NCBI GenBank assembly: GCA_038496445.1
Contig: JALMLS010000198.1
Span: 1-40,404, forward strand
Reading direction: 5' to 3'
Origin: Trichosphaerium sp. ATCC 40318
Lineage: Eukaryota; Protista; Tubulinea
Length of the DNA stretch: 40,404 nt
How positions within the stretch are numbered: the stretch's first letter is position 1; each line of letters starts with the position of its first letter. Below, piece after piece: positions 27,834-33,464 of this stretch. The notes below the pieces were generated by a model. The model saw only the letters and a program-made list of their open reading frames with translations, was not told the origin of the DNA and made no database searches. The position numbers were made by a program, and so were the translations under genes.

Positions 27834-30346
27834 ATGGCACAAGTTATAGTAGTAGGCGGTGGCCTATCTGGTTTATCTACCGCACATACCGTACTCGAAA
27901 GAGGCGGTAGAGTGTTGGTTATTGACAAAAATGCTTTCATGGGCGGTAACTCAACCAAAGCAACGTCTGGTATTAACGGAACGCCAACGCGCACCCAAGC
28001 AGAACACGGTACGTTTTTTATTTAGATTACGGCTATGACGTCATGCTAACTCGTATAGGATACGCTGATAACGTTCGCATATTCGAAGAGGACACTGCGC
28101 TTTCAGCAAGCGGCGGTAAATCCAAGGAGCCTTCCCCACTGGCAAAGGTACTATGCGGAGAGAGTGGACCAGCAGTAGAATGGTTAATCGGTACGTTTTA
28201 TTTTAAACGCCACGTCAAGCTATTTTTTTCGTTTTCCGTTTAAAACACCTGACGAAACTCTTAAATGGGTTGTTGTATCGTAATTATGCTTACGAGACTC
28301 TTTTAGAGAAATTCGGCCTTGACATGTCTTGCCTTGGACAACTCGGTGGACACAGCTTCCCACGTACTCACCGTGGTAAAGAACGCTTCCCTGGTATGAC
28401 CATCACATACGCTTTGATGGAAAAACTAGAAGAGATTGTACGTAACAACATTATTCCCAAGTACTCTGAAAACAGCCTTCAATTAAAAAAAAGTCAACCT
28501 TTATTCTTGACTACTCGTCGTATTTGATGATTTCTCTAATTTTCTTGTCTATAGGCTGAGAAAGAACCAGAACGTGCTCGTATTATCACCAAAGCACGCG
28601 TAACAAAACTACTCAAAGGCGCAAATGGAGCCATTACTGGAGTTTCTTACGAAAAAGACGGTCAAACATTCGAAGAGAGTGCTGGCGCTGTCGTAATTGC
28701 TACTGGCGGTTACGGTGCTGATTTCAGCCAAGATTCAATTTTGCGTTCATGGCGTCCAGATATTTGCCATCTCCCTACCACAAACGGTACGTATAACACC
28801 GTGGCATAGCGGTCTCATATGTTTTAAACGTTTTTGATGACATTGAGACTTTTTTTTGATTTTATTTTTTTTGACTTTCCTCTCAGGCGATCACTGTACT
28901 GGTGATGGTATTAAAATGTCAGAAGAAATTGGCGGCGGTACAACTGATATGAAGTGGGTACAAGTCCACCCAACCGGTTTGGTCAACCCAGCTGAACCTG
29001 ATGCTAAAGTCAAGTTCCTTGCTGCTGAAGCACTTCGTGGTGTTGGTGGTCTACTCTTAGACGCAAATGGTAACAGATTCTGTGATGAAATGGGTCGTAG
29101 AGATTACGTCACCGGAGAGATGAACAAAAACAAAGGTCCTTTCCGTCTTGTCCTTAACAGCGCATGTGCATCAAAAATTGCATGGCATTGTAAGCACTAC
29201 GTTGGTAGAGGTCTCATGAAGGAGTTTGATGGTAATGGTCTTGCTGCTGATATGGGTATCCCTGTATCAAACCTCAAAAAGACATTTGACAAATACAACG
29301 AAATTGCAAAGTAAGTCTTGCCGAAAAGCCATACAACAAAAAAAACAAAAAAAAACCAATTGCTAATTATTTTTCTTTTAGAACAAAGAAAGATCCTTAC
29401 GGCAAAAAGTTTTTCCACTCTGTACCTTTCACAGTTGAAGATAACTACCATGTTGGTTTTGTTACACCAGTTATCCATTACTGTATGGGCGGTCTTTGGA
29501 TTGACACTGACGCCAATGTATTGGTACGTTCTCAGCAAAGATCAAATGACGCTTTTACCTTTTTGTTTTAAAATTCACTTCTCACATTGTGTTCAGGACA
29601 AAGGAGGTAAACCAATCCCTGGCCTATACGCTACTGGTGAGGTATGTGGAGGAATCCACGGTATCAACAGACTCGGTGGTTCTTCTCTATTGGATTGTGT
29701 TGTCTTTGGACGTGTTAGCGGATCTACATGTACTCGTTACATCTTGGATCGTATCATGTCAGGTTCTATGAACCCTCTTGGCGCTGTAAGTACAGTTTCA
29801 ATGTATTCATGTACTCATTCAATACTAGAACGCTTCTAACCGTGCCTCAATGGTTGCTGGACACTTGGCACCTACTGTTACTGTTTCTGTAACACCTGGA
29901 CAAAGCAGCGTAAACATGAACATCTCATGGGGCGCTAACGCTAATGGTAAGCTTTTTACAAGCTTTTAATACTCTGTTATTTATTTCTTCCAACAGCTTC
30001 TCAACCGCCAGCCGTCTGCGCAGCAGCACCTGCACCAAAACCAGCCGCTGCACCTGCACCAGCTCCTGTTGCTCCAGTTGAGATGAAGGAATACACTTGG
30101 GAACAAGTTGCCGCTCATAACAAGGAAGACGACTGTTGGGTTGTTGTCAATGGTGAAGTATTGGATGTGACAAAGTTCCTTCCAGATCACCCTGGTGGCA
30201 AGAAGGCTATCCTCTTGTTTGCTGGTAAAGACGCAACTGAAGAGTTCAACATGTTGCACAAACCAGAAGTTATTCCAAAATACGCACCAGATGCTGTGAT
30301 TGGCACCATTGCTGGTGGTAACAAGGCACTCAAAGCGAAGCTTTAA
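27834..30346 (+). CDS. osm1: Soluble FAD-dependent fumarate reductase (Osm1/Frd1, flavocytochrome c family) fused to a C-terminal cytochrome b5 domain; unspliced end is -KAKL (PTS1)
   Basis: [10 protein letters not shown] Rossmann motif, [61 protein letters not shown]. Ala/Pro linker. b5 motifs [14 protein letters not shown] and EFNMLH. Confidence 0.93.
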
Positions 30347-30639
30347 AACCAAGCTATCTCTCTACCTCTACTTGTTTATTAATCAAAAAAAAACTACAAC
30401 ATCAGGAGAGCCCAACTGTAAACCTCCATTAAATCCATCAACAAACCAACCCTTTCTTTTCACACCCTTAGCTAGCTGTTTTTTTTTCCTTGATTTTTCT
30501 TACTTTTTTTTTTTGGTTTCTCGAAAATTTGATTTCTCTCTGTTGGTGCACTTCGTTATTGAAAAACAATTGTTCCCCTCCTTAAATCTATAATCTCTCT
30601 ACCGTTGTTGGTCTATGTGCTCAAAATTTTTATGGTTAG

Positions 30640-33464
30640 GAAGCTGCAGCGGCGCTTGCAGAAAAAACTGAGCCAAAAAAACCAGAAGGAGGTTCTCAGT
30701 TTGTGGATTTTTCGAAACCAAACAATCCAATATCTCTCAAACCTGTTGGTGTTGCTAAGCCTGGAACAGTTGAAGGTCCTCTATGCGGTGGTACTGCTGA
30801 TGAGTTACCAAACGAGCGTAAAAAGGCTACATTCGATATTGAAACAATGACGAATATTTTGGACGGTGGTCCTAAAAAAACAGCCAGAAGACGTTGGGTA
30901 TTGGCTCCAAGTGAAGACCATGGTCAATTTGAGAACCGTTATTACTGGGATAGACCAGAAATGATGAGTCAGCATATTAAAGGATTCATTGAGATTCACA
31001 AGCAGTTTGCTTTTAAATACTTGCCTACACGTGAGGAGATATCATGGATGACTGAAAACACTATCATGAGTGGTACATTGATGAATCACTACGGATTGTA
31101 CGTTTTGATGAAAAAGAAGTTCTCTTTGACTGGTGTCTTTCAATTTTTGTGAACAACAGATTTTTTGTTTTTGTGTTTTTTCAGAAGCTGACGGATATCT
31201 TTTTCTCTTTTAGGTTCTTACCTACAATATCTGGAATGGCAAGCCCAGATCAAGTTGCTGAATGGATACCTCAAATCATTACTATGCAAATCATCGGTGC
31301 TTACGCACAGACAGGTTCGTTTTATTTCTTGTTTTTTTTCAATAAAAACTCCTTTGATATTCTTGGATGCGTTGCTTCATTGGTACTTACTGTTTTTTTC
31401 AAAAAGAGCTTGGACATGGTTCTAACGTCAGAGGTCTACGTACAATGGCTACTTATGACAAGGAGACAAAGACATTCATTATGAATACACCTACTTTACG
31501 TTCTATTAAATGGTGGCCTGGTACTCTTGGAAAAGTAGCAACACATGCTGTTGTATACGCACAACTCATCATTGATGGTAAAGAATATGGTGTACATGTG
31601 TTCTTTATGCAAATACGTGATGAAAACCACAGACCTCTTCCTGGTATTGAACTAGGTGATTTGGGACCAAAACTTGGAGATGGTGCTAATGATACTGGTT
31701 TTATGAGACTTGATAATGTCAGGTATGTCTCTCTTTTGATAGTTTGTATTAATTGTTGGCTTTTCTTGTAGGATACCTTTGTTTAACATGTTGGCTCGTC
31801 ATCAACAAGTTACACCTGAAGGAGAGTATGTTAAGTCTGATAAGAAGAAAGATCCAAAGATGCACTATGCTACTATGATGTTCACTAGAGGTACCATGGT
31901 ACGTGGTGCTGGTGGTTCTCTAGCTAGAGCTGTATGCATAGCAACACGCTACAGTTGTGTACGAAGGTAAGTATCTCGCTAAACAAAAGCAAAAACTTTG
32001 TTATTGACCAAAACGTTCAGACAAGGATTCGTCGATACTGATCAAGGTGTTCCTTACAAATCACCAGAAATGAAGATTATTGACTACCAAGTACAAAGGT
32101 ATGTATTTTATCTAAATTAGCTTCACCAGTACTTTGTGCTGCGTGTTCGATGTTAATTTTTTTTTCTTACTTTTTTCTTTTTTAGGTACCGTCTCTTCAA
32201 GCAAATGGCTCTTGCGTATGCCATTAAGTTCTCTGGTAAATGGATGATACAAAGTTTCGCTGCTCTAGAAGGATCAAGCACCGCTACATCAATCATTTCA
32301 GACACGAAAGCGCTTAAAGAAGTAGCAGCTACCTCAGCTGGATTAAAAGGTTTATGTACCTTCCTTGTTGCTCAAGGTACGGCCTTTGAAATTTCTGTAT
32401 TCCTTCTGATGAACGATTAATAACTTGTTCAATAGGCATAGAAGACTGCAGAAAATGTTGTGGCGGTAATGGTTATCTCCTAAACTCAGGAGTTGCTGCA
32501 CTTGCCGGAGATTATGTTTGGCAAACAACTGCTGAAGGAGATTGGATTCTTCTCATGCTCTTGACAGCCAGGTTCTTGCTCAAGACACTTGGTAAGGTCC
32601 AACAAGGTAATAAGGTAACTGGACCTTGCGCCTACATGGCACCAGCAGGAGGTATGATTTCATCAAACAAACAACTTGCCAAAGACTTGTTTTGCTAATT
32701 TTTTACCAAGCGTCCAATTTTGATATTCGTTCTGCTGCTCCTAGAGCGCCTACTTGCGTAGAGGACTTTCTTGATCCTAAATTTTTGCTTGCTTGGTTCC
32801 ACTACAGGTCCCTTTGTATTATTGTCGATGTTGAGAATAGATTCAAGAGGATGCTTGGAGAAGGAAAGAGTTATGCTGAAGTTTGGAATGCTAATTCTAT
32901 CGAGTTGATAAATGCAACAAAATCTCATTGTCTTGCTTTTATGCTGTCCAACTTCATCGATGAGATTCAGGATATCTCTGATGCTAAGTCAAGCCAAGCT
33001 TTGCATAAGGTTTGTGCGTTATTTGGTACTACCAGGATACTTGATGATAACTGGACAGGCTTATTTGATGCTAAAGGGTACGTTGTTTTTTGTTGGTTTT
33101 ATTTCGTTTTTTTTTGTATTCCTCACGTGCTGATTGGTTTTTTTTCCAGTTTCGGTTTCTGTAAGCAAGCTGTTAGACAGCTTCTTGATGATTTAAGACC
33201 TGACGCCATATCTCTAACTGATGCTTGGGATATTCCTGACCGTGTATTGAACTCTACATTGGGTAGAAAAGACGGTACGAATGAAAAATACTTTTTAATC
33301 AACTAGCTGATTTCTCATGTTCAGGAAACGTCTATGAAGCGCTCTGGGAGGCTACAAAGAAAGCTCCATTTAACCAAAGAGATCCTTTTGTTGGTTTCAA
33401 AGAGTCTCTAGCACCTCACTTGGATAAAGAGTTCTTGAAGCGCCATAACAAATCAAATCTTTAA
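30640..33464 (+). CDS. ACOX: Peroxisomal acyl-CoA oxidase domains, with no own start codon (predicted 3' part of an FRD-b5-ACOX fusion); ends -KSNL
   Basis: ERKKATFDIETMTNILDGG, AYAQTELGHGSNVRGLRT, KWWPG, ATRYSCVRRQG, CRKCCGGNGY, TAEGD (catalytic Glu), LRPDAISLTDAW, LGRKDGNVYE. The first exon begins at acceptor TTAG|GAAGCT. Confidence 0.92.

Follow-up and report, generated by a model that had tools for sequence, protein, structure and literature searches.

In the window analysed here, a 40,404-nt stretch of DNA of the amoeba Trichosphaerium sp. ATCC 40318 (contig JALMLS010000198.1), nineteen coding exons lie on the plus strand at positions 27834–33464. According to the gene model and Pfam searches with the exons, exons 1–9 code for a fumarate reductase of the soluble kind (FRD; Pfam FAD_binding_2) with a cytochrome b5 domain (Cyt-b5) behind it, and exons 10–19 for an acyl-CoA oxidase (ACOX). 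Between the two parts lies a 314-nt intron (30326–30639) that starts with GC. It is either spliced out, which yields an FRD-b5-ACOX fusion mRNA from which it is absent, or read through, which yields an mRNA for a short FRD-b5 protein. Both proteins end in a tripeptide resembling the type 1 peroxisomal targeting signal (PTS1).

The FRD-b5 coding region, common to both isoforms, occupies 27834–30325 in nine exons, the last being 29997–30325, and encodes 624 amino acids up to ...IAGGNK. The closest solved structure to the FRD domain is yeast fumarate reductase 5glg (Osm1-type). The first ACOX exon (30640–31097) encodes a linker, a family-specific segment (KPNNPISL...GGTA..LPNERKKATF) and the start of the Acyl-CoA_ox_N domain. 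The remaining nine ACOX exons (31214–33464), in which Pfam recognizes ACOX domains, end with ...RHNKSNL; the SNL codons are at 33453–33461 and the TAA stop codon is at 33462–33464, so that 33464, given in the initial annotation as the end of the KSNL terminus, is the last base of the stop. The closest solved structures to the ACOX part are 2fon and 1w07. The EGD motif, in which the catalytic glutamate of ACOX lies in the rat enzyme, is present. The spliced product is a 1352-amino-acid protein (reading frame of 4059 nt), of which the ACOX part makes up 728 amino acids, and it unites FAD_binding_2, Cyt-b5 and Acyl-CoA_ox_N / Acyl-CoA_dh_M / ACOX_C_alpha1 / ACOX domains in one chain.

Transcription of the locus was followed in assembled contigs of four public RNA runs (X1, X2, X3 and X15), which were compared with the window over positions 29600–31400. 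Since the contigs are spliced at the flanking GT-AG introns (29786–29828, 29947–29996 and 31098–31213), they derive from RNA. These joints confirm the excision of the first two, which lie within the FRD-b5 part, and join 31097 to 31214 in the ACOX part, where a loose end is also seen at 31314. Contigs of X1, X3 and X15, runs that come from three different studies, leave out 314 bases at a joint between 30323 and 30638, the position of which is ambiguous by 3 bases. This ambiguity allows four cuts; only one of them, GC(30326)..AG(30639), corresponds to a known pair of splice sites, and we therefore place the cut there. The GC donor at 30326 that the initial annotation had proposed is thus real and used. 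The intron has the features of a U2-type GC-AG intron, with GC at intron positions +1/+2 (30326–30327), AG at 30638–30639 and exact excision. The 3′ splice region (30620–30639) consists of a putative branch sequence, CTCAA (30620–30624), a poor pyrimidine tract and an in-frame TAG (30637–30639) whose last two bases are the acceptor AG; the ACOX frame opens directly 3′ of it, at 30640.

The most complete evidence for the fusion mRNA comes from X15, where a single 4200-nt contig joins FRD, b5 and ACOX across the joint. Judged by the coordinates of the record, it runs ca. 1300 nt upstream and ca. 1700 nt downstream of 29600–31400, and its length suffices for the full reading frame plus short untranslated regions (UTRs). 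The depth at the fusion junction was similar to that of the FRD exons in the three runs. A microexon, as mentioned in the initial annotation, was not found inside the intron in the contigs of X1, X3 and X15: the transcript joint is direct. When all in-frame GT/GC-AG pairs were enumerated, GTG/GTAACA at 30318 with CAG at 30649 appeared better on paper; this pair is not used in the contigs.

Contigs of the second form, in which the upstream introns are spliced, pass 30326 without a break and end at 30451 (X1), 30444 (X2) and 30477 (X3). The b5 exon and the beginning of the intron read ...GGT AAC AAG / GCA CTC AAA GCG AAG CTT TAA. Thus, exactly as foreseen in the initial annotation, the first 21 intron nucleotides (30326–30346) encode six further codons, ALKAKL, and a stop (30344–30346), which together form the C-terminus of a 630-amino-acid short isoform ending in AKL. 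All that the initial annotation had read from the letters themselves proved correct. Both mRNA forms are present within single runs X1 and X3, and X2 contains the short form plus ACOX. Word depths of short-form and fusion contigs were, respectively, 190.7 and 134.8 in X1 and 10.1 and 4.3 in X3; in X2, the short form had a depth of 68.6 vs. 24.3 for the ACOX exons. Such depths are rough and unfit for ranking, and indicate merely that neither form is a trace product. No contigs retaining neighbouring introns were found in the four runs. These RNA-level claims are well supported.

The initial annotation framed the alternative to splicing as intron retention. In none of the four runs is the intron part 30515–30636 covered by a contig, which argues against full retention, as well as against an ACOX promoter or 5′ UTR located there, though contigs show presence and cannot prove absence. 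An ATTAAA motif was found by motif scan at 30428–30433, upstream of the contig ends at 30444–30477. The short form therefore probably arises by polyadenylation inside the intron, ca. 100–130 nt past the stop codon. The isoform switch stands in that both mRNAs exist, and its unspliced branch is more likely intronic polyadenylation than retention. Since poly(A) tails cannot be seen in contigs, the cleavage site is one that we infer, and the short-isoform 3′ UTR is accordingly delimited (30347–30477) by the contig ends at 30444, 30451 and 30477. Within this UTR, the X1, X2 and X3 contigs share three differences from the window, a TC insertion after 30356, an A insertion after 30384 and C>T at 30416, which are due either to the strains being different or to minor errors in the assembly of the window.

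The donor, AAG/GCACTC (30326–30331 for the intron part), is weak, in agreement with the initial annotation. Scored with a donor matrix built from the 17 neighbouring introns of the locus, it has 1.0 bit vs. 7.3–13.9 bits for the neighbours, which makes it weaker than all 17 of them. With position +2 ignored, the donor scores 3.8 bits vs. 5.7–12.4, still under every neighbour. The near-consensus remainder that is typical of, though not defining for, GC donors, and that usually makes up for the C at +2, is thus missing from GCACTC. The acceptor at 30639, with 5.8 bits, ranks fourth lowest when compared with the 17 neighbours. The intron is also atypically long, 314 nt vs. 43–117 nt, or 2.7 times the longest neighbour. 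The shortest intron of the locus, the 43-nt GT-AG intron 29786–29828, is excised in all four runs.

The three-domain protein is not peculiar to Trichosphaerium. A profile search with the first ACOX exon yielded relatives in which the matching part lies far from the N-terminus, with b5 or FRD ahead of it, and word searches retrieved dozens of proteins of 1150–1450 amino acids that combine FRD and ACOX in a single chain, in most cases together with b5. The fungus Calcarisporiella thermophila contributes two of these and the amoebozoan Nematostelium gracile one; many others are of metagenomic or transcriptomic origin. The window's own proteins were not found in the protein databases, where the best matches have 57% identity (fusion) and 83% identity (b5 exon); in metagenomes, no close orthologue of the ACOX exon was found, only two 38%-identical sequences (L004 and L005) without FRD upstream. 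The 1352-amino-acid model aligns end to end with family members of 1326–1395 amino acids at 54–57% identity. In the alignment, the b5 domain ends exactly where the splice junction lies. We conclude from this alignment that the fusion is an evolved product rather than a chimeric accident.

Related architectures were also found. In three distant protist lineages, proteins of 1140–1180 amino acids combine FRD-b5 with domains of the acyl-CoA dehydrogenase type (PF02771, PF02770, PF00441): P0277 and P0446 of Clastostelium recurvatum, P0286 of Colpodella angusta and P0288 of Chromera velia. These fusions are independent support for a functional link between acyl-CoA desaturation and fumarate reduction. 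A subgroup of FRD-ACOX fusions of ca. 1190 amino acids (P0039, P0151, P0155, P0157, P0160 and P0162) has no b5 domain, so the heme domain is not obligatory for fusion. Two further proteins have repeated domains: P0022 (1016 amino acids, ending in ASL) has three tandem b5 domains ahead of ACOX, and P0172 of Perkinsus olseni (2056 amino acids) has three tandem FRD units.

We then consider the C-termini, each of which was initially annotated as a PTS1. The short isoform ends in AKL, which matches the canonical pattern [SAC][KRH][LM], expected in well under 1% of random tails, and is preceded by basic residues (KALKAKL). The SNL end of the long isoform is non-canonical at position −2 and is preceded by KRHNK, with four basic residues. 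For the short form the tripeptide matches as stated; for the long form SNL is plausible as a weak PTS1 preceded by basic residues, as judged from its sequence. A variant that creates an SNL end on human PPP4R4 was predicted to be targeted; the change increased the apparent affinity for PEX5 ca. 28-fold, to 1.8 from 0.065 (in the units of the paper), close to that of a PKL ending (PMC6770196). In the general view, upstream positive charge strengthens weak tripeptides (PMC9542071), and KRHNK upstream of SNL fits this. One stand-alone ACOX relative also ends in SNL. Among relatives whose alignment reaches the ACOX C-terminus, the fusion family mostly ends in x-K-[L/M/F]; 39 of these relatives are FRD-b5-ACOX proteins, of which 14 have a canonical ending and 34 one that fits a broader PTS1-like pattern.

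We searched short protein fragments with the b5 exon and traced the matches to their source contigs. The closest match, L001, is a 1216-nt metagenomic contig of genomic DNA with 74–80% amino acid identity and the same intron positions. Its end reads ...ATC AAG GGC GGA AAG GCA CTC ACA GCG AAA CTC TAA; the donor AAG/GCACTC is identical and the predicted tail is ALTAKL followed by a stop. The K and L codons of the tripeptide differ synonymously from those of the window, a comparison that, with a single pair, is statistically weak. In five stand-alone FRD-b5 genes of greater distance, the endings a few residues past b5 are AKL, SKL, AKL, AKL and AKI, with no ACOX downstream where enough sequence is present. 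In Clastostelium recurvatum, one Trinity gene produces long isoforms of 1180 amino acids (P0277/P0446, FRD-b5-b5-acyl-CoA dehydrogenase) that end in AKM, and a short isoform, P0447, of 651 amino acids that is identical to P0277 for 645 residues and then ends with RMMAKL and a stop. Short isoforms were not found in ten further protein clusters. Thus, comparison with relatives, which the initial annotation had called for, supports the conservation of an AKL-type ending at this position in L001, in the analogous Clastostelium gene and in stand-alone FRD-b5 genes. A loss of the PTS1 from orthologues, which would have told against the switch, was not seen in these genes, and both mRNA isoforms occur in X1 and X3.

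We propose that the locus is one transcription unit with two mRNA outcomes chosen at the end of the b5 exon, where polyadenylation would compete with splicing, and that both protein forms are imported into peroxisomes. We regard this as likely. Splicing from the weak GC donor to the acceptor at 30639 takes out the stop codon together with the 3′ UTR and ca. 160 further bases, and b5 is joined in frame to ACOX to give the 1352-amino-acid FRD-b5-ACOX ending in SNL. If the donor goes unused for too long, cleavage and polyadenylation would occur ca. 100–130 nt downstream, and the first 21 intron bases would be read as ALKAKL-stop, giving the 630-amino-acid free FRD-b5 ending in AKL. The contest between donor recognition and cleavage/polyadenylation would set the isoform ratio, as in other composite terminal exons. 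Import of both forms would be PEX5-dependent. As ACOX appears never to be made alone, each ACOX in the compartment would be matched by one or more FRD-b5, with free FRD-b5 present in variable excess.

Several observations weigh against this proposal. SNL is not a canonical PTS1, and P0438, a 633-amino-acid relative that is perhaps truncated, ends in ...GKAQH without a PTS1. L001 stops 143 nt past its stop codon, so its acceptor and ACOX exon are not seen. The Calcarisporiella gene (L009) and the intronless L010 have no intron at the FRD-b5/ACOX junction, so that the switch is lineage-specific. All the RNA evidence consists of assembled contigs, which drop rare forms and give rough depths, and no poly(A) tail or read ends are visible in them. 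X15 contains the fusion alone. The X2 assembly has no contig across the junction, and its ACOX contig has 30643 as first base; judged by these contigs, the ACOX exon may have a second 5′ partner.

The short mRNA could instead be a by-product of the way in which the gene arose. A stand-alone FRD-b5 gene ending in AKL would have fused with a downstream ACOX gene, and its old stop codon, PTS1 and terminator would persist as tolerated noise in a poorly spliced new intron. Other lineages do have FRD-b5 genes that stand alone, end in AKL, SKL or AKI and are not followed by ACOX, the atypically long intron resembles a 3′ UTR plus spacer, and fusion genes elsewhere do not have this intron. Against noise speaks a short form that is, by the rough contig depths, at least as abundant as the fusion in X1, X2 and X3. 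L001 has retained the donor and also the AKL end, where the codon changes are synonymous and leave the peptide intact, and the same long/short design with a six-residue AKL tail is seen in the Clastostelium FRD-b5-acyl-CoA dehydrogenase gene. The short protein is, moreover, a complete, tagged enzyme of a type that stands alone elsewhere, so that an origin by fusion is compatible with a present function. We consider the by-product explanation unlikely.

Another way to account for the contigs is to assume two separate genes, with ACOX normally expressed from its own start, which could be the methionine of codon 70 or some codon other than AUG; the fusion would then be an occasional read-through chimera. 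The break of the X2 ACOX contig just past the acceptor, with no junction contig in that run, would fit such an arrangement. There is no in-frame ATG in the first 69 codons of the ACOX exon. The first Met, codon 70, would be a candidate start, four residues into the Acyl-CoA_ox_N profile; it lies, however, downstream of the KPNNPISL ... GGTA..LP.ER..ATF segment, which is encoded by the 69 open codons and conserved across the family, even in stand-alone ACOX members. No transcript over the DNA directly upstream of 30640 is found among the contigs of the four runs: those with ACOX begin at the acceptor rather than upstream of it, and 30515–30636 is bare in each run. Recovery of the junction from three studies at a depth similar to that of the FRD exons, and the wide occurrence of the three-domain architecture, also speak against a chimera, and we judge two separate genes to be improbable. 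ACOX thus appears to be made solely as a fusion with FRD-b5 at this locus, and since it has neither a start codon nor a transcript of its own, every ACOX molecule would carry FRD-b5.

Least probable of all, and very much so, is that acceptor 30639 also takes another 5′ exon or a trans-spliced leader, with the upstream FRD-b5 polyadenylated and an operon-like separate ACOX made besides the cis fusion: the poly(A) region, ca. 160-nt spacer and acceptor do resemble operons resolved by trans-splicing, and the X2 ACOX contig breaks at the acceptor as at an assembly-graph branch, but no run has loose non-genomic letters ahead of 30640, a leader mRNA would be translated from codon 70 and lose the conserved N-terminal segment, and spliced-leader trans-splicing is not known to occur in Amoebozoa.

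Returning to the proposed contest between splicing and polyadenylation, the order of domains and the independent fusions of FRD-b5 with acyl-CoA dehydrogenase in Clastostelium, Colpodella and Chromera suggest an electron route. Electrons would pass from the acyl-CoA flavin to the heme of b5, then to the FRD flavin and finally to fumarate, in place of oxygen. A broader hypothesis, which we offer tentatively and think rather less likely than not to hold in full, is that covalently attached FRD-b5 would wire the initial step of fatty-acid oxidation in peroxisomes to fumarate instead of oxygen, both here and in one or more further lineages of Amoebozoa. A conserved splicing/polyadenylation contest at a deliberately weak donor would then set the amounts of tethered and free FRD-b5, the free form would serve as a general electron sink, and the PTS1 in the first intron bases would keep either product from mislocalising.

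Parts of this arrangement have precedents. Cryptic PTS1s revealed by alternative splicing or read-through are known in fungi and animals (Ustilago GAPDH and PGK; MDH and LDH read-through; PMC4207609, PMC4359377). As in these systems, a choice in 3′-end RNA processing sets the C-terminal tripeptide here, and the PTS1 is intron or UTR sequence of the other form. Unlike them, where one form is peroxisomal and one cytosolic, both forms here have a PTS1-like tripeptide at their end, and what is chosen is the presence or absence of an entire enzyme of 728 amino acids. Dual targeting of the fungal GAPDH/PGK type, in which one form is without a PTS1, therefore does not describe the locus.

A composite terminal exon polyadenylated within an intron underlies the switch between the secreted and membrane forms of the immunoglobulin mu heavy chain. 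There, too, a suboptimal 5′ splice site is set against a nearby intronic poly(A) site, and read-through codons give the alternative C-terminus; the Trichosphaerium case differs in that its poly(A) site is deduced from contig ends, the donor is of the GC type and the host is an amoeba.

With respect to the enzymes, the glycosomal NADH-fumarate reductase FRDg of Trypanosoma brucei (PMC8065229) is likewise a soluble fumarate reductase of a peroxisome-derived organelle with a C-terminal PTS1 (SKI) and a fused electron-transfer domain. Its electron donor is NADH and its additional domains are ApbE-like and cytochrome b5 reductase, in contrast to the cytochrome b5 and, in the long form, ACOX found here. 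Yeast Osm1/Frd1 (PDB 5glg, 5zyn) provide the best solved match to the FRD domain and have no b5, ACOX or PTS1. The closest parallel, the Clastostelium gene, has a long fusion ending in AKM (P0277/P0446) and a short form (P0447) that diverges just past b5 into RMMAKL; it differs in having a dehydrogenase-type enzyme and two b5 domains, and is known from transcript-derived proteins alone.

In the literature searched, we found no description of the fusion family, of this switch or of the Clastostelium gene. A PTS1 gained by splicing or read-through and switches between splicing and polyadenylation are each already known. What is new is their combination, namely a GC donor weaker than any neighbour, an intron start that encodes the tag and stop codon of the short product, a tagged three-enzyme long fusion, and a design that is met again in a relative and in a second amoebozoan gene.

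In textbooks, acyl-CoA oxidase is the peroxisomal enzyme that consumes oxygen and produces peroxide. The presence of ACOX solely as an FRD-b5 fusion suggests beta-oxidation with no need for oxygen and no formation of peroxide, and the supply of a free, tagged electron-sink module from the same gene points to a tuned stoichiometry within the organelle. The locus is also an RNA-supported example of two neighbouring genes that become one while the original product of the upstream gene is kept, and a probable case of a rare, weak GC splice site in a regulatory role.

Two minor observations were made in the course of this work. A 236-nt contig of X2 (record 7) matches 65 nt of the b5 exon (30227–30291) with 5 differences and has unlike sequence on both sides, where the frame stays open beyond the point at which this gene ends; it probably represents a paralogous b5-containing gene or another organism in the sample. 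Finally, the palindrome CACGTG occurs in 30 copies in the window vs. 5.7 expected from shuffles, and two of them fall within the locus, at 31028 in the first ACOX exon and at 33124 in an ACOX intron.

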